A stretch of DNA of 64,000 bases from Hydrolagus colliei (GCA_035084275.1 CM068748.1:6882001-6946000), one strand, 5' to 3'; shown: positions 1 through 43,950, counted from the stretch's first letter. A program made the numbers and translations. The notes: a model not told the origin generated them from the sequence alone.

Positions 1-606
1 ACCTTTTGTACCATTATGCAATATGGAACAATATAAAAAAAAGCAGTATTGTGCAAGGATTTTGTTTTAGAAATATTGCACGTATACAATGAAGGGCATC
101 AGTTTTTAATTAAAAAGATTGAAGCTATAGTTCATCACATTATAAGTTCATTTAATTCAACCCGATCTGCCAAAACAGTAATCTTTTTTGGAGATTGGAT
201 AGTAAAATTGCATTGAAGACATCAGGCAATGTAAATTCTCAGTTTAGGTAGAATAAGAGATTCACTTCACCTGGCAGAATAAAAACGCGTCCCATTTTAT
301 TTAATTTCACTGTGGAGGACTAAACTTCACATACCTATAGATTAAATTCCCGTGTTACCCATGCATATTAAGAGACACTGACTCTTAAATGCTCAAGCAT
401 TCTAATCTTAACAGTGGTCAAAGACTCCTTTGAGCTGGTTGATTTCAGAAACCTCAGTCACGGCTGGTCACAGAAACGGTTGCTGAAGACCATCATATAT
501 ACCAAAATGCATGGATAGTCAATGGACCTGCACAAATTCCACCCATCGTCAACTGATGAGTGCTAGAGAGACATTGGCCAGGGATTATTCTTGCCACATT
601 CATTTA

Positions 607-913
607 TTCCTGTGGCTCAGTGGTTAGAGAACTCGCCTTGCAAGCATGAGATCTGGATTCAATTCCAGGCAGGATAAAACCTTGGGCAAATTTCCTTACT
701 CCACATTTATTAATAATAATCCCTCAAAAAAAGTAATCAATTGGTCATTTCAATCCTTGACTGTTTGTGGGATACTGCTGTGTGCAATTGGCTGCTGCGT
801 TTCACCCAGAAAATATACAATCAACGCATTTTACACTATATTCTGTGAAGTGCTTTGAGACGTTTAGAAGATGTGAAAAGCGCTATATCAAATCCAAGGA
901 TCGTTATTATTAT
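607..913 (+). mobile_element. tRNA-derived SINE, full length
   Basis: tRNA-like head (GGCTCAGTGGTTAGA...GGATTCAATTCC), body shared with other copies in the window, (TTA)n tail. Confidence 0.85.
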
Positions 914-2724
914 TCCTGGACTACAGTCCAGGAGACCAGAAACACCATGACTGAAGGTTACAATCCCATCAACCTTGAGAGTTGTGACTACCGATTGGAA
1001 GCAAAGGGAGCAACTCAGCAGCATTTTATTGATGAAGCGTTACCTCCTTTCAAATGTGATGGTGTGCAAACCCCATCTCCCAAACATGCATAGCTAAACA
1101 TCTATATTTATATGCAACAAACAATACCAGTGATGCTTTTCTGGGCTCTGCTGTAACTGGAGAAATACCAACAGTTTGGGTGCATCTTGAAGGATAGGGG
1201 AATCTGAGGATGGAGAAGTTCAATGATGACTCAACAGAAGACTGACTGGCAAGTCACTGGAGACCATCAGTCAGGGTAAAAAGGAAACCCAATTTCCAGT
1301 CAAGCATTGTTTCAACCATCGAACAACAACAACAACAAACTGCATTTATATTGCTCTCATACTTTGCTCTCAACACATGCAGAAACTCACCAACATAAAT
1401 CTGATTTTCTGGGATCAAACTGTACAAATGCATACAGTATATAAGTTTGCAGATATGTTATCACTTTTGGAACAAAATTAAAATATTGTTACCCCTACAA
1501 CTAATTCTGTAATGTGCAAAACAGCAGCAGAAAGTGAACATTTTTCACATTATATGAATATTACTAATTTCTTTGACAGTTTAAGTGAAAGTTAAAAGGA
1601 AGTGTCCACTTTAAAGGTTGATTGAAATTAGATTTAAATTTATTCACAGGCTCGACAAGCTTTCGCCAATATATTGCTAGCTGTTATTTGATTCATCTTA
1701 AACCATTTATATATTTTCAGCCTTAGTCTGTTGCTCTACAGGCCTTGGCTCTTCAACCAGGTTTCCCATTAAAACTGTTAACTGTGAGCAATGTCACTAT
1801 CTAATTCAAATTTAAAATGTTCCCATCAGTAAAATACTGTCTGCTTGTCCTTGTTAAATCAATAATGCATCAATGTTGCATAGCAATTAAAAACCAACAT
1901 TTAAAAAAAGTTTTTAAACTGGTGGTGGATTTGACATTTAAATCACTTTCTAGATGACATGTCAAAAGTTTCAAACTGGTGGAGAGGAACTATAGTGCTG
2001 ACATTATGTCCAAGTGCCGTTCCTGTGGTGTAATAAATAGCTGTGTGTGTTAAGGCCATCATCCATAACAAGACCAGAGGTACCATTAGCACTCCTAAGT
2101 GTTATATAAATCAAATAGGTGCATAAAACACCGTCTGGGGCATTTCTATGGCATGCAAACCACATGAAGATCCCATCTGCTTGGTTGATACTACCTGAGC
2201 TGAAGGCTTTGGCTACCATGTAAGAAGAAGATTAAACCTACATCCATCAAGCTGAAAGATAATTATTGCCTTTGTCAGACACCACCTGTTTCTGTAGCAT
2301 TCTTGAACTCAGGAGGACATGCTGAAACTTCCCTCTGAACTTCACGTTTGACAGCTGCTCCAGGCAGTTTTGTTCATACCTACACTACAACCTCCTCCCA
2401 CATGCCTACATCTTATATGTTTAATGCGCATACTGTATAGGATGTCTGCTTGCCCACTTTTCAAATGTTACAGCATTCATACCAGTGTTATTCAAGGTTA
2501 TTGCACAGGCACTAAACCAATCTTAATAATGAGCGCTTGTAAAAGTCAAGAGACATATTTTGCATATTTTCCTCCCAGATAAAGTCATCTAAAGTCCAGA
2601 ATAAGCATAAAAAATTCAATTGTTGATAGAAAAATGCATATTTGAATCCAGATTAGGTGTTGTTTGAAAAAAAACTAATGTTCATTTTTCCCCTTTTGGC
2701 ACCCAATATCAGCAACACACACCG

Positions 2725-2741
2725 AGGTCAGATATAGTTCA
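2725..2741 (+). promoter_or_regulatory. DR5 RARE-type motif
   Basis: AGGTCA gatat AGTTCA. Confidence 0.45.
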
Positions 2742-5305
2742 GGCCAGATGAAAGCTCTCTAAACTACTACAATGTGCCATAACCTTAACTTCAATAGCGT
2801 TCCTCTTCCTGTACAGTATCAGCAAATGTTTCCATTTCTCACACTAGCCATTGTTGTGGCCTCAGATAATTTGAGCAAGATTCTTGAATTCTGTGCTGTC
2901 TGAATTGTGTTGCTTTTGCTGAGGTTTCATGGCAAACAGAAGAGGATTTCATTCCATCAGTCTTTGTTAACTCGGTTCAAAAGTGAGGACTGTTGAATTC
3001 AGTGAAGACATTGTAAGCATCGCAGCCAAGCATGATCTGATTTCTCACCACATACACATTTCAGCCTGGAGTTAATTATCAGGAATGAGATAGTACTTTT
3101 TCTTTCCTAGTCAATGGAGTATTCAGCCAATTGAGCCAACCCTCGTATGCCACTCGCAATAAACACACTATACCTGTAATGGTGATTGGCTGAAGAAAAT
3201 AGTTTAAATCTTCGCCCATCCTGGTCTATTTAGCTCACTTACACAGTGCCTCTTTACCAAACAAGCAATCAGAGAAGCAAAAGGCTAAGTTTTTTTTAAA
3301 ACTACAGAATCAACAGCTCCATTACCAAGTAACTGCTAATGAAATTCAGAAAACCTCTAATGCATTTTGTGATGAGTTTAATGAAAGCAGCATACACGAA
3401 AGAGTGAATGCTACTGAACCTAATCTAAACCAATAGATAAATACTCAATTCTAAAACTAGAGCAATTAAATCAAGCAGAATATACTTGCACAATGGCCAC
3501 ATTATTGCTGTTATCTGAACTTCTAGAATGACATGAGGTTTTTTTGAATTCCTTATTCAACATTTTGTTGATTGTGGCCTTAACTGTAAACAGATATGCT
3601 TTTGTGAGCTGAAGTGTTGAATAACTTGTTTCATAGGATGTACTCCGCTATACATGTTTTTCAATTTACTAAATTAGAATTAAAAACAACTTTTGCTAAA
3701 GATATACTTAATTTTGAATGGTTTCCCAATGGTCACTATAATATAAGGACCAAGCAGCAGTATTAAATAAGTATCTTTGATCACTTGTACTAAGTTACTT
3801 CAGTAGCAGAGCTACCCTATTTGTGCCAAACACAAAGTGGCTCCAATTGCATGAAAACACACTGCCTGTTATCTGCCATTTTAAAAGCAGAGGAAACTAA
3901 TGAGGTGATCCTGAGATGATACCACCTTATCTTTGTCCTAGGTAGACAGCAAGCCTGCTACTAAGAGTCTTGTAACAGTGACCTGGTACACTCTCTCCCT
4001 CCAGAATGTGCTTCCCTTCAGCACATGGTTGACCTTGCATTCTCCACAGCCAGGTGCTTCACTGTGGCTTTGCAACAGGCTACATCCTTATTACGATTTC
4101 CAGATAATTAGACCCAGTAAACTTTTATAGCCAACAAATGCATCATGGGGAACAAAAAAAACAGCCAGATGGATTGAAGACAAAAAAATACAATACAATC
4201 ACTCTTCCAGCAATCTGGAACCTGCTTTTCTTTGGCTTAATGGTTAGTTGTCATGTTTTGACTTATACAAATGTGGGAAGGAAAGAAAGCCAGGTTTAGT
4301 CTTAAATTGGATCTCAGAGAGACAACAGTGGCAGTATTATTGCTATTGGGCTCAAGACTTGTGGGCTACAGCCATGGAGAAGGAAAATAGCTAGTATTCC
4401 CGCATCCAATCACACACCAGTAATTCCTGCCAGAAAGTGCTTCGACGCCAGGAAAGTCTAAGAGGTACAGTTGCTGTCCTCCCTTGGATGAGTAGCTCAT
4501 CAACATTCATAGGCTATGCTCATAAATGAAGGGCAACTTGGACATGATCCTAGACAATGGCAGTCTGATAGAATCACAGCTTCAAATCAGGAGATAATTG
4601 GGTGGGGGAGGGGAAGAGGAGAGTGAAAGGAAACAGAGGAAGAGAAACCTTCAATAATTTGCGCAGGAATCCAGGCAACATGCACCACACCTTTTTATGC
4701 TGAGAAAGTTTCAGCAGTGATCCAAACCAAATTCAGATTGTTTGACTATGGGAGCAACTCAGACAATTCGAGGACAGAGCAGGACAGTTTCAGCTAGAGA
4801 GGGAGGGGTAAGAGACCCATATGTCTCAGCGCCAGCTGAGTGCAGCTTATAAAATAACTGTAGCCTTGAGTAATTCCACAAAAGCCAGTGAAAGCCCAGA
4901 AAAAAAATGGAGAGATGTAGACAGAAAAGGGTGAAAGCCGTTGGCTGTCTGAATACAATAGAGCTGCAATAATTTAATAAAATGCATTGCCAAGAAAAAT
5001 ATTCAGCATTCAGTGGTTTCGACTGCTAAAGGTTACAGTACCTTATTTATGGGCCTACAGTATTAAGTAAGTACAGTACTTATTTTTTTACATTTTAGAA
5101 AATGAACCCATTCTACGTGACCATTCTATTGTTGAGCAGATCAATAACTAAGTATTTACAAATGGTTATATTGAGTTAAGAAGTGCAGTAAACACACCAC
5201 GGCTTGTTCCAGTGAACTCCATGCCCTGCAGCATGTGAAATCGGATAAGAAGCTTCGACTATCTCAATGTTGCTATGACTTGTCCTGGGGAAGCCTCCAA
5301 TAAGG

Positions 5306-5329
5306 GGGTCAAACAGAGTTCAGTGAACT
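5306..5329 (+). promoter_or_regulatory. DR5 RARE-type motif with overlapping IR1
   Basis: GGGTCA aacag AGTTCA g TGAACT. Confidence 0.65.
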
Positions 5330-5538
5330 GACAAATCAACAATATCAGCTTTTCCAAGGTGCTCCTTTCACTTATCTCCAATCCCTGCTAGTTATTAAAC
5401 TGATGGCTTATACTAAGTAAATAAGAAAAAGTTTTCCCTTGCCAAATGACCCAGACAAGGGCCCATGCGCAAGATTCTGTCGACAAACCTCTGCGCAAAG
5501 TTGATTTAGTCTGTTGTGCTGCGACAAATGCAGCTAGC

Positions 5539-5567
5539 AGTTCAAAAGTTCAGATGAACCATGAACT
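5539..5567. promoter_or_regulatory. Composite DR2 + DR1 nuclear-receptor element
   Basis: AGTTCA aa AGTTCA ga TGAACC a TGAACT. Confidence 0.65.
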
Positions 5568-7785
5568 TTACCATTTCACAGCAGGCTGTTCCATAAATAC
5601 AACCGAAAGGGAAAAGTGGTTAAGGTCCCCAAGGCACAGAACCAAGTGTGGCTGTGTTGAAGTCCTTCCTTGCCCCTCAAATGGGGGTGGGTGCAGGGGG
5701 GCAGGGGAGAAAAGAGATGGAAAGAGAAAGATAGTTGTGAACTAATATGGTAAAGAGATTTACTTTTAAGACCTTATAAGGACTCAGTCCACGTTTTTAG
5801 TGCTTCTGGGCAAATACTTAGTAATGATGAGCCATTACTTTGGAAAGTAAATCTACTAGAGTTATTCAGGAAAAAAAAGAAAATTCTAAGAGGATTTGTA
5901 TTCCTGGTCATGCCTTTTGGTCTCTGTGGTGGCATTCCTCCTAGTACGGAACTTAGTGGAAAAATCAAAACAAATGGGTCATGACTTTTCGTATTTGTTT
6001 AAAGCTGATGTATATGTCATCTTGTGATGTGGCCTTGGACCCAACCATGCAAAACAGTACAAAGCATAATTAGGCTGGGAATGAAAACAAACATATGTTC
6101 CATGCTCCTTTAACTTTATGTGCTAACAAGGAAATTACTCATCCAGATTTTCACAGGAACATATAAAAACATACATAGCACACGTTCTGACATCTCACAA
6201 TTGTCGAGACATGCAATGGCAGGAAAGAAAGAGGAGCAAAAAAGGGAGAAGAGAGTCTAAATCCTATACGTAGACCATCAAGAACAATTTGTCAATTATT
6301 AGACAAAATTTACAATCCTGGTGGCCCTCAAAACTAATGTTTGCTTAGCAAAACACTAACGAGACTGCAGGGAATAGCAGAGTTGCACACTAAGGCGTTT
6401 CAATCAGATCACAGGTTTCGAGTATAGACAGAGCAATGCATACTACTGTAAACTGAACAAACAATTCAAAAGATGATTATGAACTCTTTGGTTGAGGAGG
6501 CACATACCAGAGGACTCCAATCTGTCCTGTTTTGTAACCCCACTCAATATCTTTAGTGGTTTTATCCAAAGCAGCAAAAGATGATCTGCACTTTGGGTTA
6601 AAGCACTAGAAAAAAATATGCATTTCTACAAACACATTCAAGTGGGATTTTATGTGGAGGAGATTTTGTTTGGAAGAATTAGAGAGTCCTGCTCAAACAG
6701 GCTGGCAATATTGGTTCATCAGCTGGTACACACATCAGGGAATTCTTCGGTAATGCTCATTCTAGAGGGAAGTGCACACAGACAATTTTGAAGTTTTCTC
6801 CTTGAAGAGAAGTTCAAAAGAGTATACTGTGTCCATTGAATGGACTCCTTTTGAGATGGTAAATTTACAACTATAGCCTAAATATGATATTCAAGACCAT
6901 TTCTGTGAAGGAAACTGCAATAGTTCTTCCATCAATTATACAAAAAAAGGCCTTCAATTGCCACCCCACCCCCCCACTCCTTTGTGGTATTTAAGGTAAA
7001 GCGAATCTACAAAAGTTTCAATCCTATATTTACCAGTCGATACAAGTGGTTCGACTGTTAGAAAATTGGCTATTTCCTATCAAATATGCAATATTTTATT
7101 TTATTGAAGTACTGTATTCCTAACAGGTAGGAAGCGCTCTGAGACGCCATCCGGCGTGGAGGGCGCTATATAAATCGAAGTTGTTGTTGTAGGAAATGCA
7201 GAAATACTGTAACAGCTGCCTGGAGTCAGAAATAAGCTTTAATTTCCCAGAAATGAAAAGTACTTGAACATGAACTGAATATAAGAAGTAGAAAGATTCA
7301 AATGCTCACTTTGGAATTTAACTTAAGATAAATTGTATTACATTGTATCACAGATCCACTTTGCTTTTTCAGCTTTAGTTAAAGATAGAATAGGCTATCA
7401 TTTAAAAAATAAGATCCATTGGAACGTCTCCAGTCCCTCTCCATCAGTACGTCTGCAATATAATTTCTCCTCAGCTTTCCTCTCTGGATCTCTTCAAAGT
7501 TGTTGTTCAACTTCTATCTCCCATGAGGCCTGAAATTCTACATAGTCTACAAGTCTTGCCAGAGATATCTATATATTTTAAAAAGATCATCTTCTTTTTA
7601 CTTTAACCAAGAAAGTTCTTATGCATTCCCCCCCTCCCACCCCCCCGTTTTTAAAAGTACTGTACTAGATTATTTCAGGAGGACAGGAACTTTAAAATTT
7701 TCATAATCTTAAAGAAAATAAGTTAAAAATAGTATCCAACATAGCAAGTTGTGTGTGTTAAACTGTTGTAGTGACCATTGAATCA

Positions 7786-8102
7786 GAGCCTAAGTGGAGC
7801 TCAGTGGTTAGAGCACTCACCTAACAAGCATGATACCCATGTTCGAAACCAGGCAGATCAGGGCGAAACCTTGGGCACGTTTCCTTATTCCACATGCCTA
7901 ATAATCATCCCTCCCCCCCAAAAAAATTGGTCATTTCGATCCATGGCTGTTTGTGGGACACTGCTGTGCACAACTGGCTGCCGCGTTTCGTCCACAAGTA
8001 TACAGTCAATTCACTTTACAGTATATTATGTGAAGCGCTTTGAGACATCTTGTAGATGTCTCAAAGCACTATATCAAATGCAAGGATTATTAGTATTATT
8101 AT
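7786..8102 (+). mobile_element. tRNA-derived SINE, full length
   Basis: Same family as 607-913. Confidence 0.85.
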
Positions 8103-8109
8103 AAAACTC

Positions 8110-8412
8110 CAATGCAGTGGTGATTGTAAGTTTCATTGTCAGAGATGCCGTTCTTCAGATGAAATGTTAAACCAAGGTGTTCACGTGGACATCAAAGGTC
8201 CATGGTACTATTCGAAAAGAAAAGTGAGTTTCTCCCTGTGTCCTGGTCAACATTTCTTCGAATAGTCACTTATTCCACGGCTGTTTGTATACAACCGGGT
8301 AGCTCGTTTCATCCACAAAATATAATCATGCACTTTACAATATATCCTGTGAAGCAGTTTGAAGTTTCTTGACAACATGATAGGGTGCTATATCAAAATG
8401 CAAAGATTATTC
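8110..8412 (+). mobile_element. SINE with Deu-like central domain
   Basis: gatgccgttcttcagatgaaatgttaaacc...atcaaaggtccatggtactattcgaa resembles the DeuSINE core; same 3' tail as the main SINE family; similar to 40295-40690. Confidence 0.55.
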
Positions 8413-9066
8413 TTAAGGTTTTGACCCAGGTCAGTGTCATGATGGAAGGTGGCAAGCAAATACAAAGCATTTCCCAAGGAGTAAAATAAATGTCATGTTA
8501 TGAAGAACATTGATGTGAGATACAACCTGGCAGAGGTTGAGAACAGGTTGTCTACTTCGACTTTTTATTGGTCGGGCAGATTAATTTAAGAGACAATATT
8601 AGGAAAAGGAGTTTTCAATCAAGACACAGGGACACACATACATTCACTGTATTTTTGTTGTGTCATTTTAAATAGAAAAAATGAACATATACAAAATAAA
8701 AATTTGAATACTTTCTCTAGAACTCCCACCTGCACCACTGCTGAACTTCTGACTGCATGAAAGTAGTCAACAAGGTCATGAGCCTTTCAGGGACCAAAGT
8801 CTTTCATCAGACCATCCGTAAAACTAATAGTCAGAATACCAGCATCTCCCCTGGGGTCTCCTGTGGCCTGTGTATGAACTCCATTCTGCTCAATGCTGGT
8901 GTGACAGAGAGCAGAGCCTTACCAGATGGCAAATACGACTGGCAATTCTAACATCAGGTATATCGGGTCAGATCTACATAAGGCCGTGATATTTCTTTGC
9001 TGCTTGCTAGCATTATTTATTAAAATATAGTCCAAAATCAGATAATGTTAAAATGACTTCACTTAC

Positions 9067-9162
9067 CCTTTAATATAGATGTCACTCATCTCTTCTCCAG
9101 TGATGCTCTTTTCGTCCAGGATTACATCACTAGTGTTCCAGATTATGCAGCGTAGCACATTC
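9067..9162 (-). CDS. MYOF: MYOF exon (~48), last C2 domain start
   Basis: 96 nt; [32 protein letters not shown]. Confidence 0.95.
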
Positions 9163-10110
9163 CTGCACAGAACACATTATCAACATGATCAGCAAGGTTG
9201 TAGTAGTTGAAATGATGATATCCAGCCCAGCAAGCTCAGATAATGATTTGATAATTGGACTAGTCAACATTTTCTCTTCCTAAATCAATGAACACTTAAG
9301 ATATTGAACAAAGGTTCAATCTTTTAAACAAGCATTGTATCCAACATATACTAACAGTTAAAATAAAGTAAACTAGAGCAACTTCAGAAGTAAATTTTAA
9401 GAATGTCGACCAACCTTCCTTAATTTTCCCTCACCTCATAAGAGACCAATTCATTCAAGGGTGCAATGGAGTAAGACCATTTTGGATGTGTGAGCCAAGC
9501 CAAAGACATTACAGGTAAACCAGGTTACATTTCTCACAATAAATAGCAATTTGGATTATTAATATTTTCTCCCTCACTAGCCCAGGGGGCTTGTAGCAAT
9601 TTAAAAGAAGAAAAAAATATATTTGGGGCTTTTTCCAGCTGAGATCAGATAAAAGCACAGATCAGTGCTGAAACTCTGGGACCTTTTGGATTTGCACAAC
9701 TGAGTTTTATTTCAGGCAGTGGAAATACCAACCAACCTGAAAGAAAAAATAAAGCTTTACTTTAAGTATTCATTGAATACCATCTACAGACAATAGTGAA
9801 CAGGGAGCCCTGAAGACATTTCATTAAAAGAGTTCCAATGATTAAAGGCAGTAAACGGAAGCAACATCAATAGTCAGGGGAGAGAGAGTGAGATAAGAGA
9901 AAAGTGTAGGGCTTGAAATTATGCTTACGACGTGCCCACATAAGCACACACTCAATTTGCTATGTGTAGCATCCATTTCATTCACCTCCAAATCGCAACT
10001 ACACTCCACAGAAAATCTAGTGAAGTGCCGTGAGACACCCTCCAGACATGCAAGGCTCCACATCAAATGCAAGGATTATAATAATTTCAATTGAGTTCAT
10101 GTACATATCA

Positions 10111-10383
10111 GAGTCCTGTTGCTCAGTGGTTAGAGCACTCGCCTTACAAGTGAAAAACTGGGTTCTGTTCCAAGCAGGGGGAAATCTTGGGCGAAAATAA
10201 TCCCTCAAAAACAAGTGGTCACTCAATCCATGACTGTTTGTGGGACACTGCTGTACACAATTGGCTGCTGCATTTTGCCCACAAATATACAGACAATTCA
10301 CTTAACAGTATAATCTGTGATGCGCTTTGCGACATCTAGAAGATGTGATAAGGCACTATATCAAATGCAGGGATTATTATTAT
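10111..10383 (+). mobile_element. tRNA-derived SINE
   Basis: Same family as 607-913. Confidence 0.85.
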
Positions 10384-10664
10384 AAATCAGAATATTTGCT
10401 GAACCTTTCATTGCATCAATAATCAAGCAACTTAAAAACACTCAACTCTTTAAATATAAATTGCATTTTATACTATCCCTTTCACATCAGACGGCCGTCT
10501 CAACATTTGACATGATTTACTACATAGTGCACTAAATTGTATACTATACATTATGCACTGTATAGTGCAGACTGAATTTTGAAGGCAAAAATATTACGTG
10601 AGCTAATCAGCGACAAGTATTCATTGAAGGTTTGCTTAGACGTTGTTCGTCTCAATTAAACTTA

Positions 10665-10820
<156 letters not shown>

Positions 10821-11309
10821 TCATAAATCAATGCCCTACAACAAGTAGCTCAAAGTAACAGTATCTTCTGACTCCTATCTCCTAAGCTATTCATTTCACT
10901 TAGCAGTTCCTCAGGATACAAGATGTTTGCTTTGGTACCAGTATCATATTAAGAAAATATAAAAAAGGGATGAATATGGAAATAGAATTAAGAATTGATA
11001 CCTCCAATAAAGAGTTAGCACAGCATGTACACAGTATGGTATGACATGATAAACAGTGTCATCTTGGAGCTGAACTGGCTCCAAGGTGACACGCTTGACA
11101 ATGGAATTGAGCTGGTCTTCTGTGGCAGTCTCGATAATCCAGTTCCTGAGCCAAGCAGGTCCACAGTATTCCAGGGGATTAAGTACAGTGATAGGTTCTG
11201 CATGTGTCAGATACCCGGCTAACCCCTCCAAATATGTACACAATAGGCCAAATGGCCTCTGAAACATATTCCTCTCTTCAATTTATTCATTTGGACCTGA
11301 ATAGAGAAG

Positions 11310-11333
11310 GGGTCACCAGTTCAAATTGGTTCA
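11310..11333 (+). promoter_or_regulatory. DR2 + DR4 triple half-site element
   Basis: GGGTCA cc AGTTCA aatt GGTTCA. Confidence 0.55.
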
Positions 11334-11707
11334 CAAGATAAGAGTTCTGATGAAGATTTGATCCAATCCTTCCAGAATCCCCCTTACCATTGTTCCATTA
11401 CAGCTTCAGGTTGTGTTTCAAATGATTCCTGGTTTTGCTCTCCTGCCTAGTAACTCATTGCAGTTGTTAATTACCATCTGGGTTAAAAATGCTTTCTGCC
11501 ATTTGTCCTAAAATTGCTGATCGCCTTCCTGAACTTGTGCTCCCTTGGCACGTCTGAAACATTGTTCTGGATTTTCTCAAATCTCAATCCCATTTAAAAT
11601 GTTACACACTTGCATCCAGTACATCATTTCAGAATCTGTACCATCATTAAACAATATCCAGTTAGTTGATAAGTATATATTTTGTTGCAAGTCATTTGTG
11701 CCAATCA

Positions 11708-11884
<177 letters not shown>

Positions 11885-14534
11885 TTATTTTTAAATGAAC
11901 AAAACAAATTAGACAATTAAAAATTGCTTGTTTATTCTGATAACTATACACATGTTCAACCTCATTTTCAGCAGCATTATATCTATTAATAATGACAGCA
12001 CTTAATGGATATATTCTGAATATATTTTAATACATTTAAGTAAGTAGCATAGGGGATTCTGCTGGGAGTACAGGAATACTTCTGTGTACAATATTCTCAC
12101 TTACTTGTATATTGTACAATATTTAGCATTAAAACTTAGTAGTGTTTTCATGATAAGGTAGTGACTAGACCTCCATGGTGATAAGCAAACAGATGTCAGA
12201 AAAATGAAGGCAAATTGCAAACAGCTCTTTTCATCTATCGCTCATTTTAAAAAGAAAGATCATGGTGCGATTCTTTTGAAGAACAATAAATGATATTTTC
12301 TTTATACCAGAGATCACAGACTCATTATAGAAACACAATCATATGCAACAAGTTATCCAATTATATCTCTTCACATTTTGAGATAAAAGACAAAATGTCC
12401 TTAGAAACAAAAATTGGCAAAAAAGATGGACATAGAACTGCAGAATATCCATGACAAAACATTTCCTTTACTCTTTTTTTTAGCATTTCCTAAGGGCATC
12501 TTGTTTTCACATTGTGAAACACAACCTTCAACTCTATTTTGTATCCAATTTCCACAAACACTAAAGACTGCAAGAGTTCATGCCCTTAGTTGTTCTCTAT
12601 GAACTTATTCTGACACTAATTTCCAAGAAAGCATCATTTCGACACAATTGCACTACTTGGCTTTAGGCCACAATTTCAAAAACACAACTCTGTGCAAATG
12701 AGGCTCCCAAATAAACAAGATCTAGTTGCATATACTCCAGGAAACCACATATTTTGACACTAGATTACATAACTTTCCCTAGATTTATTACATTAAAAAC
12801 AGCTGGATTACACAAACAAATCCAGAAAGCTGCAAAAAGCAATACAAGACCATGATACTTGCACATTAGCACTCTCCTACATTAATATTCTAGATACTCT
12901 GCACAGGCACAAGACTGCACAGTTCTCAAGAGTTTTCATTCCCTTTTATTCCTCAGTATGGTAACCATAACATGGCATAATGCAATTTATTGCTATCAAT
13001 GCAAAGTGGTTCTCTGCGGTTTACAATTTTCAACAAGGTTCTGAGCATCTGTTGATGCCTCAGACACCAGAAATTACTTCCACCACATAATCAACAGTTC
13101 GACCAAGGTACCAGGAAGGGTATTGAGGTTGGGACATTGGACTAAAAAAAAGGTTGTTATTATGTACAGATGGCAAGATCATTGCTCTGAACAAGGTGAG
13201 TTCAAATCAGTCAAAGAACTTTCTTCAACTGAACCTTTGGGGATCTTGAATTACATAAACCCAGACAGTGAATGCTGGCAGTATTTGGCTGTAATGGGCA
13301 TCAGACGAAGTCCAAATTTTGCTCAGCAGATGTCTACTTTCCTTCAAGGTCCACTGCTATCTTAGGAGACAGAATCATGGTGGACATTACCCTGCCTAGT
13401 GCAGGATTTGTATCACTCCCTGCTGCTGCTCTCAATAGATCAGCTGAGTGAAGATTGAACCTGGGACTTTTGTGGTCTGGAAGACTCCACTGGCACTTTA
13501 ACTGTTTAATGTACAATAATTTCAAGTGTGCTGGACAGTGTAGTCCCAACACAAAACACAGTTTCCTTAGCATTTTGCCACCAAACGCCAGTATTTTTCA
13601 TTTCTACTAATGCTCTTCTATGGAATGAAATGGTTAACTTTCCTGTACTTGAACACAGTTACTAAGGCAAGTAGCGCATTTATTTATATGGAACATCTGC
13701 AGCTTTCAGGCAGCTGCCAAAGCACGAGTTAAAATAAACTGGTGAAAGGAAGCTGCCCAGTTCATGGAGAGGGCAGAAACGATATAGTGCAGCGAGTCCC
13801 TGACACTTTTGCACACACAGGCAGAAAGAATCACCCCCAGCTGCCCCGCTACAAATCTCCCCCTGAATCAGTGAGAAGAAATGCTCTTCACAACATTTCA
13901 CTCTCATTTTAGCACCCATTATCTCTACTTTTCATACTCTTTGGGTTCATTCCCATGTCAAACCCACCAGTCTGGCTTGTGCATTAGACTGCTCTCTCAT
14001 TACTGCTGGAAAGCACAGTTTCGCTCTATTGAAATACTGATCTTCAAAGATTTAACTAATGCTTGGATTGTAAAGCATTTTAAAACACTTCGGAATTTTT
14101 TTCCCCCCAATTTTAAGGGTCAACAAAAGAAAATACCAATGCAAATAACTTGGAAGCTATCACAATAGTATACGATGGCTAGGTAAAGAACCAACAGTCT
14201 AACGTTACTGACAGGTTGCAAAACCACCCAGAATACATTCCAAAAATAGTTTGAACTCATATCAAAGCTAGAGCAGGTTCATAATCATAGTGAATGCAAA
14301 CATGTTAGAGATTTTCATATTGTTGGAAGTGTAGTATTTGAAAACAATACTATATCAATAAACTGCCTAATTAGGTGAAACAAATAAAAGTCTATAGTTT
14401 CCTTTTCCCCACTTCTAACTCCTCCTATTGAGATTCTCACTACCTGGAATGTTGCTGTGGTGTGCTGGTGATGCCAATACAGTATAAAGTTACTGTACAG
14501 CAATGGATAAATACAGAATAGCCACAAATGATGC

Positions 14535-14660
14535 ATAGACAACTATGCATTTCGCCCACAAATATACAGTCAATTCACTTTATGGTATATTCTGTGAAGT
14601 GCTTTGAGATGTCTAGAAGACGTGAAAAGCGCTGTATCAAATGCATGGAATATATTATTA
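14535..14660 (+). mobile_element. SINE 3' fragment
   Basis: ...gtgaagtgctttgagatgtctagaagacgtgaaaagcgctgtatcaaatgca. Confidence 0.75.
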
Positions 14661-17290
14661 TACTGTATTACTCAACCAATGCTACTATACACGAGTCTAT
14701 TAAATCTACCAGTGGTAGACATATTAAAATTATCCACGAGGATAATTAAAAAAAACTAGAACAGCATTAACAATATGTGCTTTGAGTCAAAACTTATTTT
14801 TGGTAAATTTTATGCTCAAAGCTATGGATGTCAGACTGCACGTCACCAGCTCTATGCACTCTCCATGGTCAGGAGTAGCAAAAGCTCTCATTACACAACC
14901 TCTAATTAAGTCAGCCACTGCACCAGCATGATCCACTTCTACCTCACAGCCATCCTCTTGAATGAGAAAAATGTGGCACATGGTCACCAGTAACTGTTAA
15001 GTCTTCTCAAAACACCCTCCACATAGAACTCTTTACACTCTGCACACTCTACAGCCAGATAAGACTTATCCCACATCTGGTTTGGATTGGAATCTAGATC
15101 CTAAAAGGTAAAAAGCCAATGACTCATTGTGCCTCACTTCATATGTGGTCCCAATTATCTTTTGTTATCTTTTGAGCTCCTCTTGCGGGTGCAGCATCAA
15201 AACATAGCTTGATTTCCCCCCACTGATCCAGCATGAGGGTCTCCAAACAACAATCAGGAAGAACCGTAATAAGACATAAGCTTTCTTATCTCGACGGTGT
15301 TAAGGCAGACTGCAACACCCCTGCTGACCTACTGATGCACGACTACATCTTGATTTATATCCATTTGTTAGGGTATTGGTTTTGGCAGAAGCACAATATC
15401 AGCCAGACAGTGATACATATATTTACTCCAATTCTCTGTAGTCCCACCCATTGAGTACATGTGGGAAAGCCTATAAAGTTCAAGGCAAGTCATTTGCAAC
15501 GTACACATACAAATGCTACAGTTTGGCAGCAATAATGTAGAGACATTAGAGACATGTAGAGGTATTAATGTTTTTTTTCGGGTGAGCAGACTTTCCATGA
15601 CGCTTGAGGAAATTTTGTGCTGGCTAGAAAAATAACCTGATGCTTTGGCCCTCAATATTTAGGCAAATTTGGGCACATAGTGAGGTAATGGCATTACATT
15701 TACATTACAGCATTGGTGCCAAGTTGAGGCTTGGATCAGAAGCATTGATGTAATACAAATGCACCACACAACATTGGACTGTTTATCTTTTGTAATTACC
15801 AACGGAAGGGGTATAAATCAGTCATCCCAGTTTTACATTTCAATCCCAAAAAGTCAAAAGCAATAAAAGAATCCCAAGTTACAAATAATGGCAATTTGGG
15901 ATTCTCAATTCATAGAATTGAATCATCTGTAACAAAGTTGAATTTACAGTTTAAAAACACGTTGAAGCTTTTACACAACAAAGTCTTGAATTGGCCGAAA
16001 AGAAAAAGCAAACAAATGCTTTCTGCTCTCTCATTCCCTCCCCCAATTTCTCTGCAGAGAGCTCAATCAGAAATCCCATGATCAAGCCTCCATCAAGTTT
16101 AAGTTGATGCTTGAAGGAGCATAAGAGTACCAGGATACCTCCCCCTTTCATTTCCTTTCCCACTGAGAAACGTCTGCTACTTGGTTGAGACTGGGAGTTT
16201 ATTCTGATAGAAATCTACCAATTCATGACTGTTGGTACAAGATCCAAGATTGCCAAGTATCCTCATCCCACTATTATTCCTAAATCGATTTTATTGCTAT
16301 GGCAACGGAACAAATTAGACCAGATTAATATCAAACCCTTGTGCTGGACAGCAAGCTCTTTGAATCAAAGCACTATATGAACCAAAAAATGTCACAGGCT
16401 TGTTTGGCACAGCTTTCTGCAAGTTCCCAAATCATCTTCAAAGAGCTGGCTTGGTCTGGAGCAAAAAAAAGATGCCTTTGGAAGAGGAAGACTCAACAGA
16501 GCTCATCTGATGTTGTTAATATACACACAAAGTTATCACTGATCTGCCCTGAACTTCACCTTTAAACTTCCAATGTTTAGATCAGCATTACATCATGCAT
16601 TTCAAATGATTTTGCATATGTAGCACTTGAAAATAAAACCTTCTAAGAGAACATCGGGTATAGCATGAAAAGTGCACACAATATTGGGTTACGTCCAGCC
16701 TGAGGCACATAGCACGTGGGGCACACATAGCTTTTTGCATAGGCTTTACTGAAGACTTGTAATATTTACAGTCAGCAATCGCTTCTCCCTCCAAGCTTTA
16801 ACTTTTTACTAAAAATGTTGCTAACTTCAAAGAACTGATTTGAACTTGAGCTGATTTGAATGTGGCCAGAGGTTGTCGAGGTTAACTGTTTCACAACTGC
16901 TGGAAAGAAGCGGCAGCGATGCAGCCACCATCAACGCACCACATTCCCAGTGACGATAAAGGACTTGAAAATTTACCTTTGTTACCAAGCCTCTTCTAAT
17001 ATGAAGTGCTGAATTTTATTTTTTTTGCTGGCTTATCTGTTCAGGCTGGTATTAAATTGCACACGTTTCTGAGCCTTCACGTCAGAATGCGGACCTCAAA
17101 TGAAGTGTCACTCAACACCAAAGTCAGATGAGGTACGTTCCAATTCGAGATCTAAATCTTTGTTTCAGTGGAAGGTGATCTGGCCCTTTCTTTCCCCCTT
17201 CCATGAGGGCAGAAGGTTAAAAGGGGTATAAACAAAAGAACCCACTCTGATCTTTGTCAGTTCAGAATGTAAAAACACAGACTCATGCTT

Positions 17291-17304
17291 TGAACTTGTG
17301 AACT
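17291..17304 (-). promoter_or_regulatory. DR2 RARE-type motif
   Basis: AGTTCA ca AGTTCA on the minus strand. Confidence 0.55.
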
Positions 17305-18089
17305 GACATTTTGAAGTGCAAAGCAGCTTCTGGCTTATTATGGAGCTAAAGTGGCTTTGCTTCTTGGATAAAGAGATGGAGCAGGGGGAAATATCCAGAA
17401 TCCCGAAGGATTATAGTACTTGAAGAGTTGCTGTGGGTGAGAGAGTTTCAGTCACAAACGTTCTTCTGTTGGATTCAAACAATGCCTTAGAATCCTGCAA
17501 TAAGGCATGTAAATTACCAGGAGCGTCCGTTAACCACAATACTGGCATCGAGGTATGTAAGGAACATCACAAAGCAATAAAAGCAGATAAAACAAGTTTC
17601 ATAAAGCTACATTACCAGCTGGAAACTCAGTCAGACATTTAGTTTGAGAAAATTCTCATTCCCAGTAACATTTTTCAAACTGAAGCCCAAGTGAAAATTA
17701 ACTGGAAAACAGTCTAGAAAGTTGCAGGTGCATACAAGTTATGTTTATACAGTGCCTTTCATTTCAGGAAGGCAGTGACAGAGGCAGGCAAAGTTGACTA
17801 GATAGGGAAAAAGCAAAGCACGCAATCCCAAATGTAGGGTTGAAGGATAGTTGGAGGGGCGGGCAAAGACTGTGTGATGAAGTGAGCATTCTTTGCTGTC
17901 AGGTGAGAAAGTGCTGATATGAAGCCAAGATGGAAATGTCTAATCTGGTTGGTATTCAGCTGCAGAAAATTAATACTACTCAAGAAATCTCTCTTTGAGC
18001 ATATCTTTCCCCCACTCTGACTGATCCAATATAGGTATGAGGAAGTTTTTTAACTCCTTAGAAAGAATGAGGCTTCCTGCCTCTAATGG

Positions 18090-18450
18090 ATGAGTGGATA
18101 AATGCCACCTGGCACACCAGAAAATCACATAAACCAGAAGGTTTCAGATTCAACTCTCTGCTCCGAGTTAGATGAATCTTTGCAGAGCGTTAGTTGGCTT
18201 CGGTTGCTGTGAGTTAAGCAGGGGGGGGAAAAAAAAGCCAGGATTTCTGCTCCTGATCACTACCAGTGAACCTTGCTGGAAAAGTGCACATGTGTGGATG
18301 TCAGTTAACAGGATCATGCACAGCTGTGATGCACTACAAGGGTGGATTAGCCTGCTGACATCCAGACAAGGCTCACACATGAAGTACCACTTGGGTGAGG
18401 TTTATAAGAGTCACGGACGTGCACTGCAGAATTCAACACTGCAGAGCTGC
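18090..18450 (+). repeat. Old interspersed repeat (SINE-like); degraded relatives at ~4290-4600 and ~22800-23000
   Basis: Shared tctgctcctgatcactaccagtga...ctggaaaagtgc motif; family not identified. Confidence 0.5.
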
Positions 18451-18599
18451 TGTACTAAGAGTAAAATGGATGCTGTGAGAATTCAGAATCTGCAGATTTA
18501 GAGCTCCCCCAATTCAACTAAAAAGATTCTGGGGTTTTAGAATGAATGCTACCAAGACAGCAGAACCAGATAAGTTTACAGTGTAAATGGAAATTTCTG

Positions 18600-18805
18600 C
18601 ATAGGTGCCAGGAGGAAGTCGTTTATTTTTAGGAAAAGAAGCTTGGATGGTAATTAATGACTGGAACAGGTTACCAGGAAGCATGGTTGAGGCCATCACA
18701 CATTTGAAAAGCATGATGCTGTGAATGGGAAGAGAGCAGAGCAGGTATTCCAGAAGGATGAGATGAAATGGGCCGAATGGCATTCAAACCTCTTGTGATC
18801 TTGTA
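18600..18805 (+). mobile_element. CR1-type LINE 3' fragment
   Basis: tggaacaggttaccagg...atggttgaggc...gatgaaatgggccgaatggc, typical CR1 3' end. Confidence 0.55.
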
Positions 18806-19225
18806 AATACAAATCCAGTTTTGATCACATGCCCAGCTTGAAGGTATTACGATTTTATTTCATGAGACATTTCATGTAACTACCATTGACATATTCAACC
18901 ACTAATTTCAGTAAGTTGCACGAGGACAGAATAGAATACAGAAATCCATTGCTTGTTCCATTTTTTGAGAAATGGGACTTTTAGTTGTATTTTAGAAGAT
19001 GTATGGAGGGTCATTTGCTCTATCAAACACATGTTCTGTACCAAAAAGATTTAAACACGTATCATTTCGGTTTTCCTTGAACTCAGACTTAGCTGTATTG
19101 CAAAACTCACCGTATCAGTCAGCTGGATGAGTCAGTTGTCAAAATGTCAAAATGTTTCAAGCACATATCAAAATAAAGCAATGAATAGAAGTTTCCTTGT
19201 TCATGAAATTATTATTGTATTACCC

Positions 19226-19259
19226 TGAACTGCCAGTGAACCCTTCTTGCTTATAAAAG
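19226..19259. promoter_or_regulatory. DR5 RARE-type motif next to a TATA box
   Basis: GGTTCA ctggc AGTTCA (minus, 19226-19242); TATAAAAG at 19252 (+). Confidence 0.6.
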
Positions 19260-22200
19260 AGGCAGCTGTTCGTGCGGCTAAAAGCCATGGTTCACTACAA
19301 ATTGACCCTGAATTAAGGAGTAAAAACTTCCTCCTTGCTACTATAACTATTCAAACAGTCTGGAGATAAACAATAATTGAAGTTGGAGGAAACTGCACCA
19401 GAAAAGCCCACTATACTGCTTTGGCAGAATTATAGTAGTGCTTGGAGCATCAAGAGCAATACAATGTCAAATTACCCTAAAATTTCCCCTTACCCAAATG
19501 TAATAGGTCTGGCCTGCCAACTTTAGTACAAACAAAGGCTGATTGTAATGACGCCTAAGCATATGAATATCGAAACATTAACCAACATAAATTTTGCACT
19601 TTCAAAGCTTCGTGTCGGGGCTCTGATGTAGTGTACCTATTTAAATTCTCTGCAAGTCTCCCATTAAATCATTCGCTAAGGAATTGCTGTGGCTCATTTC
19701 AAACTGTAGTTCTTTCCCTTTAATTACAAACGCTCTGAGAATCACTAAATCTGACTAACAAAATGAGGTTTTAGATCACTGCTGGTTCTTTCCACGTTGC
19801 ATTGCATGCAAGAATCTCAAGGCTTTATTAGTAGCTTGCTACCTCTTTTGAATCAGTGCTGTCTCTTCTGTCTCAGTGGTTGGTCTATGGGAGTCAAGCT
19901 TCTGTTCCCAATCTACATACTGCCTTATGCCAGATTAGTCTATGTACACATAATTAAATTCAAGAGTTTCCAAACAGCTCTCAGTGTAATCTTCAACACT
20001 CCCATCATTGAAGCAACAAACCCAGCATGACAGACAGCAATAGACTGGGGTGGGGGAAGGTAGCTAGAATCTGAAGCCCCTCAGGTGTTATAAGCTCAGG
20101 CACAACGTTTATTTGATTCATAGCCGGGGCATCACTGTCAATTTCAGCATCTTTTTTAAAGAAAGAAGTCAAGTCAATAAAAGTTTCATTTACAAGGATC
20201 TTTCCATGTGAGAATATATATATATATTTTAAAAATCCATTGCCTGCAGCAAACCAGGAGCTAAGTGAATGTACCAAAGTGATGCATTCTGCCAATGTTG
20301 ACACTGACAACCTTTCGACAGCAACAGAAGCAGAAGTGTGGCTGCTTCTGATCTCAGGCAGGTGAAGCTCACATCAACCAAATGCAGGCTTGCAAGTAGT
20401 TTTGAGATCACCGACTAGTACAAATCCTCCTTAGTTATTGCCGGACATATCACCATAGCTAATAGCTTTGACCTGCTCGGTCATTTTTAAATGGAAACCA
20501 ATTGCTGTAGAAACTGTCCAATAATAAACAGGTGCAGTTTTTGCTACACTCAAAACAACCAGAAAAATAGCATGTATTAGGCTGAGGCTGGGAAATTGTG
20601 TAAGTTGTTAGGCAGCACACGATAACAGACATTAGAGCTATGGAGGATACAATGTAGGATCACAAGGATGATAAAAGTAAGAGGGGTAGCTAAATAGGTC
20701 ATATATTTCTGTTGGGATAAAGGAAGCATGGTGGGTGATATAACATAAAAGGATAAGGGACTAATTGCACTGGTGGATGATTTAAATCACAATTTTGAAT
20801 CATTGCATGGGTGGCTTTTGGAGTAGAATTGATTGGTGCATTAAAAGGTAATGAGATCAACACAGGCTGAAGAAAGGAAACAAAAATAATGTTAGCAATG
20901 TTAAAATAACTGAAATGGAAAATATTATCATATATTAGGTTATAAGAGCGTGAAAATATAACCACCATAAAAAGCTTGGGTGGTTGCAATTCTTTTCATG
21001 ATCGCATAGTCAGTCAGCATCTCTGAGTCTAGTTCATACATGAAGAGGAACCACAAATCAGCTTGCACCCCGCCTCCCCACCGTCCCACCAAACTATATC
21101 CCAGCAAAGGCAGTGCCTTCAAAAGAAGTGGAAAAGTATACAAAGTAGAAAAGAAGTGTGAAAAAAATCACAATTCTACTAATACAGTAAGCAAAAGCTT
21201 GGAAAGGTTACACTGAGACCAACAACCCTTCAAAGCGAATGGCCTCAATTTAAAGAAAATTAGAATTTCACTGACAGTAGTCAACACAGTATGTGCTGTA
21301 AGATGAAGTATAAAGGAACACACCGGGCTACACATGTACACTTAGTGAGCACACATGTGTGCAATCCAAGTGGAGATCATATTAACCCTATCTATAGGGA
21401 TCCCCAGGTATCAAAGATTCCAGTTGTGTAATATGAAAATGTCATGGTAAATACAGCACCAAATACTAAGCAGGCTGCAGTTTGATCTAAATAACCTTAT
21501 TGGCTAAGAATGAACTACAAAATTTAGCAGCTTTAAAGCTTAGCAGCTAATTACTTTAGCTTTGTGATAGCAACATTAGTCATACCACTAAGACACTGGA
21601 ACAGATTGATATCCTGTTTCATCTTACTAGCTGCATCACATTACATATGTTTGAGTGGAGTACTCAAATGCTACAACTTTTGAATGGTCCCATTTACTTG
21701 ACAAATTAATCTCAAGATTGCTTCAAATATAGTGAGCAAAAGCAGGTAATTTACTAAATTTCTAATTCTGAACAGTTTCCACGTTACAGCTGAATAGTGT
21801 ACCATCAAGGCTTAAAGCGTGCTATAGAAAACTTGTGTGCAAGATTGCAAAGAAATTGGAATAAAGCAATTTGAATTTTGTGCTAAGAGTGAACACTCCT
21901 GCTTTATTTTTTTCCTGTCCAAGTACAAAACAGGATTATTCATATCAAGAGGGATGCTACTTTTACAAATGAAAACCCTCTCTCGTTTCCAGTCAGATAC
22001 ACAATTTCATTTATTTGCTCTCTGAATGTTTTGTTTTGGCTAACTTTCTATACACTATACATCGATTAAAACAAGAATCTTGGTTAATTTTCCCTATCCA
22101 TAAATGAGGAGTACTAAGAGCAAACAACATACCCAGACTGTTGCCCTGGTTGAGATCAGCTAACCGAATGCAGTCTGGCAATCATACCATGCCTTCTGGG

Positions 22201-25200: not shown

Positions 25201-26234
25201 AGCCTTTCCCCTTTTGAACAGTTTCACATTTTTCCTTCATTCCTGTCCCTCACTCCCCTATTTATGGTTCAAAAAAATTGTATTGCTCACTTTAGGATAT
25301 GGATCCTGATGGACTCATTGGAGGACCCCGCTGGAAAGAGTTCCTGAGTTTGATGGTGTAAAGAGTTGAATTGATACCAGCAGAAAAATTATAAAGGCTA
25401 TCTGAATGCTGCAAACTGTAGCCAGAGAGCATAGTTCGAGATTCTGAAAGGTATTCTGCAGTGCCATTTCTCGAATACAAACTGATCAAACTATCCTTGA
25501 AATACTAGGCATGGATGAGAAATAACTGCTAGGAACTTTGAGAGGAGACTCTAGGGATTTGCAACAATATTGATTCAATGGATTGAATAATAAAGAGCAT
25601 CAATTCTTAAAACATCATGAAATCAGGTTCATTCATAGGATTGTAATTGCACAACTCTAATACAGCTTTTAAAATAAATACAGCCTTCCTGTGGATTTTG
25701 TAATTTACAGAGCAAATGACAAAACAGTAAGGATTACTAGTTGTAAGTTTTCTCTACTTAAAACAAGACAAAGTAATTTATTTTAGCTTCACATTTACAA
25801 TGACTTAAACATACAGCTCATGGTATAAGGCAAATGTTTCCTTCTCTAGCAGATTAATGAGTTATTTGGAAGCTTCATGCAATTTGAACCTCAATTTCAA
25901 TGCAGTAAACCCCGGGCTCCAGGTATTCGGAATTCGGACCGGGTTCCAAACCAAATTATTGATATTAAAATTTCCAGACTCACATGTACAATTCTGCCCT
26001 ACCTCACCATGCTTGTGAGCCATCAGTGGCCAGGGATGGACTTGATCGGTTTGAAACTCGTGAAAAGATTTGCTATGTTCTGTTCACGGGATTCAAACAA
26101 TGTCGGTGCGCAAAAAAAAACTTAAATGCCAATACCAGCATTGTAATTCCACTTAAAAATGCCTGTAATAGATTTCCCCCCCTCTCCTTTGCCAGGCTAG
26201 TGTAGTGCATTCTAAAGTACTGTACAATACTCAC

Positions 26235-26383
26235 CAAATGCACTTAATGTGTACTCCTGACCATTGTATCCAAGCGTATTTCCATTATCAGACACAATTG
26301 GTGGAGGAATACCCTTCATCTTGGCTACATTCTGTAATAGCTGGGAAGGTTTCAGTTGATCGCGCCATGCATTTATCCCAGAT
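26235..26383 (-). CDS. MYOF: MYOF exon (~45)
   Basis: 149 nt; SGINAWRDQLKPSQLLQNVAKMKGIPPPIVSDNGNTLGYNGQEYTLSAF. Confidence 0.94.
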
Positions 26384-26719
26384 CTGTATAAAATATAAAA
26401 ACGTAATTAATACATCAAACATACTAACAAAAAAAATTGGTCAATCTTCAATATATAGGATTCGTTTATAGAAAAGTAAAAAAACAAAGGACTGGATGAT
26501 ACATTGGCTGACACTGTCTGGGCTGGATTTGAGTTCCAGATGCAGAATGAATTTTCCAGTCTTCGATGAAAGAGGATCTTAACTGAAATGACTTCAGAAT
26601 TCGCAAGCCAGTTCCCAGTACTTGGGAGTGTTCAAAGCCCAAAACTGTCCAGGATTACAAATTTGCTGACAGTTGGCACTCTATTTCACTCATTACCTAT
26701 TATATAATTATTATTATAT

Positions 26720-26837: not shown

Positions 26838-27272
26838 TGGAAAGTTGAAATGTCACAGTGATACAGTACATTGTACTCTGGAATTAAGGCCCAATTTTTG
26901 CTATACTAATGGGAGCCTTAACCTCCATCTACTCATGTATAATCTGGCAGTATTTGATTCAGCAGCAAATGAATGGGGTTTATTCTCATCTTGACATCTC
27001 ATCAATGCTTGCTAAGCAAACGGAGCAGACATCTACAGAATAATTTTTGTATACACGAGGATGTAAATGTGCATAGATCTTTGCAACTGGCACATTCATT
27101 TTTGATTTGTCTGATTGTTTACAAAGAAGAAGAATTTTATAGCATTGTGAAGACAATTCAATATTTTTCATACGCATTCAGTTTCAGTCATTGTTTGAGT
27201 TTCACTGGTAAAGGCTAAGGAACAACTTGTCAGGATCCAGTCCTGGATTGCCTGCTGCTTATACTACTACTA

Positions 27273-36797: not shown

Positions 36798-36913
36798 TAA
36801 AATACCAACTTCAAACTCAATGCAGTCATCCTTGATAGTGAAATAGACCACTTGCTGCCTCCAGTTGCATTTTGGATTGCAATAAAACCCATAATTCTAA
36901 TTAAGTTACTTAC

Positions 36914-43933: not shown

Positions 43934-43950
43934 AGGTCACCTTCAGGTCA
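43934..43950 (+). promoter_or_regulatory. DR5 RARE-type motif
   Basis: AGGTCA ccttc AGGTCA. Confidence 0.45.

Follow-up and report, generated by a model that had tools for sequence, protein, structure and literature searches.

Retinoic acid (RA) signalling is kept in check chiefly by Cyp26a1. The RA response elements (RAREs) classically described for this gene are promoter elements, and a signature of the form AGTTCA(N)5AGTTCA is associated with CYP26 genes of deuterostomes, the sea urchin version being an AGTTCA direct repeat (DR) with a two-base spacer, i.e., a DR2 (PMC5247814, Table 1). How the induction of Cyp26a1 is wired beyond its promoter is only now emerging in the mouse: in embryonic stem cells, a distal enhancer containing two RAREs (mm10 chr19:37,788,057-37,792,531) is needed for full induction, binds RAR-alpha/RXR-alpha, brings in p300 and makes contact with the promoter of Cyp26a1 (Li et al., J Biol Chem 2026, PMC13738024), and, in F9 cells, a DR5-containing region downstream of Cyp26a1 becomes more accessible and, late in the response to RA, is occupied by RAR/RXR (Chatagnon et al., NAR 2015, PMC4446430). 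The surroundings of the gene are described as long-lived, with Myof and Exoc6 flanking Cyp26a1/c1 from lamprey to mammals, and with Dysf and Exoc6b flanking Cyp26b1 (Bedois et al. 2024, PMC10879103). The subject of the present analysis is a 64,000-nucleotide stretch of the chimaera Hydrolagus colliei (GCA_035084275.1 CM068748.1:6882001-6946000; hereafter “the window”), in which perfect direct repeats of the nuclear-receptor half-site RGKTCA gather in the 3' introns of a myoferlin-like gene, a putative neighbour of cyp26a1. On the mouse map, the distal enhancer interval given above would presumably lie in the gap that separates the 3' end of Cyp26a1 from that of Myof, i.e., on the same side of Cyp26a1 as the window, and ~90 kb away from that gene.

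That side of CYP26A1 is also of some practical interest, as human trait-associated variants map between CYP26A1 and MYOF while the causal gene is unsettled, which makes any conserved elements found there worth knowing about. The index variant of a human association study is described as downstream of CYP26A1, CYP26C1, EXOC6 and MYOF, and this description fits a tail-to-tail CYP26A1/MYOF arrangement.

Perfect direct repeats and their chance expectation

A regular-expression scan of both strands of the window (38.5% G+C, no N, 183 perfect RGKTCA half-sites) for direct repeats of RGKTCA with spacers of 0-8 bases returned nine perfect repeats and no further ones, namely one DR1, three DR2, one DR4 and four DR5, with not a single DR0, DR3, DR6, DR7 or DR8. 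Eight of the nine are of the type expected for RAR/RXR (DR1, DR2 or DR5; hereafter DR1/2/5), and seven of these eight fall inside the first 20 kb. The perfect repeats that a preliminary description of the window had listed at 2725, 5306, 5539, 5555, 11310 (a DR2 plus a DR4), 17291 and 19226 were all recovered at those very positions, and the only additional perfect element it had spotted by eye in the remaining 44 kb, at 43934, turned out to be just that.

Such a number is far above anything that chance would be expected to deliver. The preliminary description had guessed at ~0.1 perfect DR1/2/5 per 20 kb, and the simulations, yielding 0.17-0.24, agree with it in order of magnitude: 500 dinucleotide-preserving shuffles of the first 20 kb averaged 0.17 (largest 2) and 200 order-5 Markov simulations averaged 0.24 (largest 3) against the seven observed, while over the whole window, where eight are observed, the mean was 0.57 (largest 5) in 500 shuffles and 0.47 and 0.81 in order-3 and order-5 Markov simulations, respectively (200 each, none of which reached eight). 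Expressed as a Poisson probability, at least seven perfect DR1/2/5 in 20 kb correspond to P ~7e-9, or to P ~2e-7 when the same excess is counted as six separate loci, and the real half-site density, which gives an expectation of 0.26 per spacer, leads to P ~2e-6 for at least eight in the window. The 58 other spacers in the range of 0-60 hold, on average, 0.34 RGKTCA repeats each, with a maximum of two, and, among all the motifs that share the degeneracy pattern of RGKTCA and have 130-240 half-sites in the window (n=3069), RGKTCA ranks first in the first 20 kb and second over the window, surpassed there solely by the low-complexity motif RTRTAT. The comparison with shuffled sequence that had been proposed along with the preliminary description upholds the excess, and so do the Markov simulations and the control motifs. 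A certain look-elsewhere correction has to be allowed for, as RAREs are noticed occasionally in this genome, but it is minor in comparison with the probabilities given above.

Repeats with a single mismatch behave quite differently, the window having 13 DR1/2/5 of this class where 16.2 would be expected, and the first 20 kb six where the expectation is 5.05. Because this class sits at background, the excess is confined to perfect repeats, which disfavours both compositional bias and decaying repeats as its source; the one-mismatch DR5s pointed out earlier at 12600 and 13759 are indeed present, but, belonging to a class found at background, they lend no weight to the case. Compositional bias was accordingly rejected as an explanation on the joint account of the dinucleotide shuffles, the order-3 and order-5 Markov simulations, the 3069 control motifs, the other spacers and the one-mismatch class. 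As to the make-up of the elements, six of the seven carry AGTTCA as their downstream half-site (P 0.03), and a DR4 and two kinds of inverted repeat (IR), an IR1 and an IR2, are additionally found in the array.

The conserved core at 5.2-6.0 kb

The densest part of the array contains four half-sites within 29 bases (5539..5567), in which a DR2 on the plus strand (5539) faces a DR1 on the minus strand (5555) to form a near-palindrome. When metagenome contigs were scanned with an IUPAC pattern of the architecture of this composite, 13 matched, 12 of which are otherwise unrelated to the window, and one (Ga0181612_134040, 12,224 bases, 40% G+C; hereafter L005) is homologous to it. Two non-coding blocks, collinear and in the same orientation, can be aligned: block 1 at 5212..5615 (blastn, L005:1324-1735, 73.4% over 418, E 2.8e-56; 294 of its 404 letters identical) and block 2 at 5910..6028 (blastn, L005:1986-2103, 75.8% over 120, E 4e-16). 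The rest of L005 shows no alignment to the window, either as DNA or translated, and no ferlin exon; since just the two blocks align, the source must be distant enough for only constrained sequence to be still alignable. Judged by its sequence, L005 is vertebrate DNA from such a distant organism; its observed/expected CpG ratio is 0.24 outside the GC-rich end, and no short interspersed element (SINE) of the 7SL or tRNA type was found in it at E up to 0.1. Positions 1-500 of L005, ~1 kb from the conserved block, have 60% G+C and may represent either a CpG island or some repeat.

An independent test of the half-sites is offered by those parts of block 1 that the search pattern did not cover. The DR5 at 5306, which reads GGGTCAAACAGAGTTCA and is followed one base later by an inverted half-site TGAACT (DR5 + IR1, 5306..5329, plus strand), was no part of the search pattern, and its counterpart in L005 reads GGGTCAGGTAAAGTTCA: all 12 half-site letters of the DR5 are kept and only one of the five spacer letters is (Fisher P 0.002), while, over the entire DR5 + IR1, 18 of 18 half-site letters are kept and the spacer base of the inverted repeat is changed. 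A lone half-site TGAACT on the minus strand (5213..5218) retains 6/6 of its letters, and the half-site at 5447 has lost one. Taken together, the half-site letters of block 1 lying outside the search pattern are kept in 29 of 30 cases, against 236 of the 345 other letters (Fisher P 2.7e-4). The composite itself is part of a 31-letter run, including its near flank, that is identical in L005; within this run, the search pattern had fixed the half-sites and left the five spacer letters and the flanks free. Block 2 adds GGGTCA at 5976-5981 (6/6 kept, inside a long invariant run) as a sixth independent half-site. In its 12.2 kb, L005 has three perfect DR1/2/5, every one of them within the conserved block. 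In the window, two RARE-type elements, the 5306 DR5 and, 215 bases away from it, the 5539 DR2/DR1 composite, share one conserved block.

A nuclear-receptor site that works would be expected to keep its half-sites while its spacers change, and the alignment shows the module at 5.2-6.0 kb to be a DNA element under constraint, with that constraint falling on nuclear-receptor half-sites. Invariant runs shared by the window and L005 are also seen outside the half-sites, i.e., 20 letters at 5277-5296, just upstream of the DR5, and, in block 2, a run at 5950-6005 around ATCAAAACAAATGGGTCATG and GTATTTGTTTAAAG; these resemble Sox- and forkhead-type sites and may be candidates for such.

Closer relatives were approached through public sequencing runs, in which, of the words sampled from 1000-6999, a share of 0.52 recurs for organism B, 0.12 for organism C and 0.05 for organism D, and four runs were mapped onto that interval. 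Contigs of organism C cover nearly all of it, with 38/348, 208/2638, 55/516, 97/1623, 19/162 and 32/196 differences per piece, which amounts to ~6-16% divergence; the piece with the dense module (4808-6430, 97/1623) is the least diverged of the six, albeit by a modest margin. A contig of organism B over 2169-3037 has seven differences, none of which is inside the 2725 DR5. In all four runs, a short (AAC)n at 1322-1340 attracted depths in the thousands from unrelated contigs (bin 1200-1399), a mapping artefact.

The host gene and the elements outside the core

Ferlin representatives, retrieved with a ferlin C2-domain exon of the window and mapped back by tblastn, indicate that a minus-strand ferlin gene spans the whole window. 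Coding exons, all on the minus strand, are found at 9066..9164 (P0046, P0055), which borders an intron of >9 kb; at 10665..10763 (75% identity to both P0046 and P0055); at 11735..11851, which borders an intron of 14.4 kb; and at 26215..26385 (P0014, P0046, P0055), on the far border of the latter. No ferlin exon was detected by tblastn of these representatives in 1-9065, and the intron sizes given in the preliminary description (14.4 kb, i.e., 11852-26214, and >9 kb without a detectable exon) are right. Pfam recognizes FerB (E 9e-28), with C2 slightly under the cut-off (21.7 bits vs 22; E 2.5e-4). The best match is P0014, a protein of the carp family whose source name is myoferlin-like and to which most exons show 50-81% identity, as against mostly 35-75% for P0046 and P0055, which are fer-1-like-5 proteins; this points to a myoferlin-like ferlin as the host gene in a direct comparison that covered myoferlin-like and fer-1-like-5 proteins. 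The earlier placement of the repeats in the 3' introns of myoferlin is borne out, by the exon map and Pfam alike, for a myoferlin-like gene: the >9 kb intron contains the elements at 2725, 5306, 5539 and 5555, an intron of 971 bases has those at 11310/11318, and the one of 14.4 kb has 17291 and 19226.

Four loci of the first 20 kb lie outside the conserved core. The first is a perfect DR5, AGGTCAGATATAGTTCA, at 2725..2741 (plus strand), outside intra-window repeats. The second, between two coding exons, consists of three co-oriented half-sites that make up a DR2 and a DR4 (11310..11333, the DR4 starting from 11318; plus strand), and the 14.4 kb intron contributes the other two, both on the minus strand: a perfect DR2 at 17291..17304 (AGTTCA-2 bases-AGTTCA), with a third half-site at 17259, and a perfect DR5 at 19226..19242 (GGTTCA-5 bases-AGTTCA). 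With 0.24 expected in 20 kb, four such loci exceed what chance would supply (P ~1e-4). In a more 5' intron, the perfect DR5 AGGTCACCTTCAGGTCA at 43934..43950 (plus strand), with a further half-site at 43977, is the one perfect DR1/2/5 in 44 kb, just as chance gives.

Eleven letters, GTGAACTGACA, are common to 5322-5332, following the 5306 DR5, and 17297-17307, at the end of the 17291 DR2; as six of the 11 are the half-site itself, this sharing may be due to chance. In L005, the letters beyond the half-site differ. Three perfect half-sites crowd into <60 bases at two more places, 24338-24393 and 59292-59342, in neither of which the spacing is that of a DR1/2/5.

Proposed receptor and target gene, and the closest known systems

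The densest cluster is probably a hormone-responsive switch, perhaps one for the neighbouring RA-degrading gene, and, for the locus as a whole, the balance of the evidence tips, if not by much, towards the 3' myoferlin introns housing an RAR/RXR-type enhancer set with a conserved core of ~0.8 kb, which would be RA-dependent and have cyp26a1 as its likeliest target. RAR/RXR heterodimers would occupy the DR1/2/5 repeats of RGKTCA, the 29-base block of four half-sites offering room, in principle, for a pair of receptor dimers in head-to-head orientation; unliganded, they would keep co-repressors at the repeats, and RA would then bring about the recruitment of co-activators and local acetylation of chromatin. 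The module would loop to a promoter of the same domain, most likely that of cyp26a1 and possibly that of cyp26c1 too, the outcome being extra negative feedback that clears RA. RAR/RXR and cyp26a1 are the best-supported receptor and target on the grounds of the spacer spectrum, the AGTTCA-rich half-sites, the putative cyp26a1 neighbour and the mouse precedents taken together. Of the RA enhancer array put forward in the preliminary description, then, the excess of perfect sites, the position in 3' introns and the conservation of the densest cluster (5.2-5.6 kb) hold up, and the remainder, that is, receptor identity, RA dependence, target gene and the function of the four outlying sites, we infer.

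Several points weigh against this assignment. [quoted passage not shown] Cyp26a1 is outside the 64-kb window, its adjacency here being putative. Conservation in L005 is limited to three of the seven elements (5306, 5539 and 5555), and the half-sites of one block were selected by the pattern. L005 moreover has no ferlin exon, extending 1.3 kb to one side and 10.5 kb to the other, and so its copy may lie outside MYOF, or at a paralogous as opposed to an orthologous locus. Finally, the homozygous deletion of an RA-inducible element just upstream of mouse Cyp26a1 leads by itself to a complete loss of induction (PMC8643627), so that distal sites may be modulatory only.

Among the other explanations, the one that survives best, unlikely though we hold it to be, is that of a real nuclear-receptor enhancer that works through another receptor (COUP-TF/NR2F, HNF4, PPAR/RXR, TR/RXR and orphan receptors are all candidates) and/or serves MYOF or another gene, with RA and cyp26a1 uninvolved. 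Conservation of the half-sites, after all, proves a constraint on RGKTCA and not on RAR, the array does include a DR4, an IR1 and an IR2, the elements do sit inside MYOF, and the further invariant runs (20 letters at 5277 and the long one in block 2) must bind other factors. The spacer spectrum, however, is RAR/RXR-like (DR1/2/5 = 1/3/4, with DR4 = 1 and DR0/3/6/7/8 = 0), the AGTTCA-rich repeats fit the CYP26-type RARE signature, RAR/RXR-bound regions occur on that side of mouse Cyp26a1, of which the chimaera counterpart is a putative neighbour here, and no literature match joins myoferlin, all-trans RA and RAR, a negative that is silent on other receptors.

More improbable still is that only the 5.2-6.0 kb module is functional, with 2725, 11310, 17291 and 19226 being there by chance or neutrally, so that there would be no array to speak of. 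It is true that the conservation in L005 does not extend to any of these four, and that the 20 kb boundary was picked after viewing the data; yet four more perfect loci where 0.24 are expected, an extra perfect half-site near three of them, and a single perfect DR1/2/5 in the other 44 kb of the gene speak against such a view.

Very little credence can be given to the conserved block being part of a transcript (an exon that has gone unannotated, a structured RNA or the precursor of a hairpin arising from the palindromic composite) instead of a DNA-level enhancer: positions 5500-5610 do fold at -29 kcal/mol (z -2.5; one of 200 shuffles as good), but the window and L005 are separated by many short gaps, tblastx matches are spread over both strands and several frames, none of them being long and dominant, a 99-aa open reading frame over the composite has no Pfam match and shares no words with any of 5.8 billion proteins, no Rfam family is matched, three of the 11 long-range stem pairs, as read from the alignment, are broken in L005 without compensation, and no listed run holding 1000-6999 is recorded as RNA. 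The exon or RNA-structure candidate was rejected on the basis of the gaps, the both-strand similarity, the lack of a family match and the uncompensated stem changes.

Equally far-fetched is the idea of the repeats being relics of a transposable element family that carried RGKTCA repeats, for which the presence of a tRNA-headed SINE family (~11 copies) and a fragment of a long interspersed element (LINE) in the window might speak: none of the nine elements, nor their surroundings of +-300 bases, overlap the intra-window repeats (6% of the window by self-comparison, chiefly the ~300-base SINE), the +-200-base flanks of all nine match nothing in the window except themselves, no element lies in a tRNA-like SINE head (ARAGORN; two such heads were found, far from the elements) or an Rfam family, and decayed copies would have lifted the one-mismatch class, which is nonetheless at background. 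Flanks, self-comparison, ARAGORN, Rfam and the one-mismatch class all led to a transposon origin being rejected.

For the record, the SINE family, with its tRNA-like head, is ~300 bases long and represented in the window by ~11 copies or fragments, seen by self-comparison at 606-914, 7795-8106, 10111-10385, 14538-14662, 27265-27555, 31809-32108, 36622-36801, 43147-43253, 53617-53913 and 54891-55004; the heads at 31811-31882 (tRNA-Val, 50 bits) and 606-676 (31 bits) still score as tRNA. The LINE-type reverse transcriptase fragment is at 52307-52741 on the minus strand (RVT_1, E 5e-4, under the Pfam cut-off).

Returning to the RAR/RXR-type enhancer set with cyp26a1 as its putative target, a bolder version of it, which is offered tentatively and as rather doubtful for now, would hold that the distal RARE enhancer of mammalian Cyp26a1 has its cartilaginous-fish counterpart in the module, and would see, in the module and the outliers together, an ancient RA-feedback array in or beside a ferlin gene. 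Were this true, the need of such an array to stay in cis with cyp26 would explain why ferlin, Cyp26 and Exoc6 have remained linked since before the split of jawed and jawless vertebrates, and would do so in both paralogous regions, Myof-Cyp26a1/c1 and Dysf-Cyp26b1. Regardless of that, the module, being compact, defined in its sequence and endowed with half-sites that a chimaera and a distant vertebrate have both kept, is a ready test object for questions of a more general kind: how old is the distal feedback enhancer; what is the reason for mixed RARE spacings; do enhancers in MYOF keep MYOF and cyp26a1 together?

Among the literature matches listed, there is no report of RAREs in MYOF introns, a point on which the supplementary RAR peak lists of PMC11040003 and PMC4446430 may have a bearing, and no treatment of the locus as a genomic regulatory block. 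The closest described systems share a good deal with it all the same. The promoter RAREs of vertebrate CYP26A1 (R1-R3/R4) are likewise AGTTCA-rich DR5 and DR2 elements, several of which cooperate per gene (PMC5247814, PMC10879103), but they are situated ~0.1-7 kb upstream of the start codon (PMC5247814), whereas the myoferlin sites would lie beyond the 3' end and inside the neighbouring gene. Multiplicity of the kind seen here is known from amphioxus, in which 13 RAR/RXR-bound repeats surround the CYP26 cluster (PMC5247814). The mouse distal enhancer also combines several RAREs in one element (PMC13738024), as does the 5.2-5.6 kb block, and differs from the latter in being intergenic, while the chimaera elements are inside MYOF introns; the F9 region resembles the array in its DR5 and downstream position, but is a single site in a mammal and not an array (PMC4446430). 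With genomic regulatory blocks, the locus has in common that an intron of an unrelated neighbour harbours conserved non-coding sequence (5212-5615, 5910-6028) and that there is a long-lived linkage, i.e., that of ferlin, Cyp26 and Exoc6 in two paralogous regions (PMC10879103), although such blocks feature arrays of conserved elements, whereas here there is one conserved module, whose action on the neighbour would be a matter of inference. RARE enhancers as such are known, and for Cyp26a1 they comprise distal as well as downstream examples; what is unusual about the chimaera locus is the number of its perfect elements, their position inside the introns of a neighbouring gene and the conservation of a module over a distance at which neutral sequence no longer aligns.

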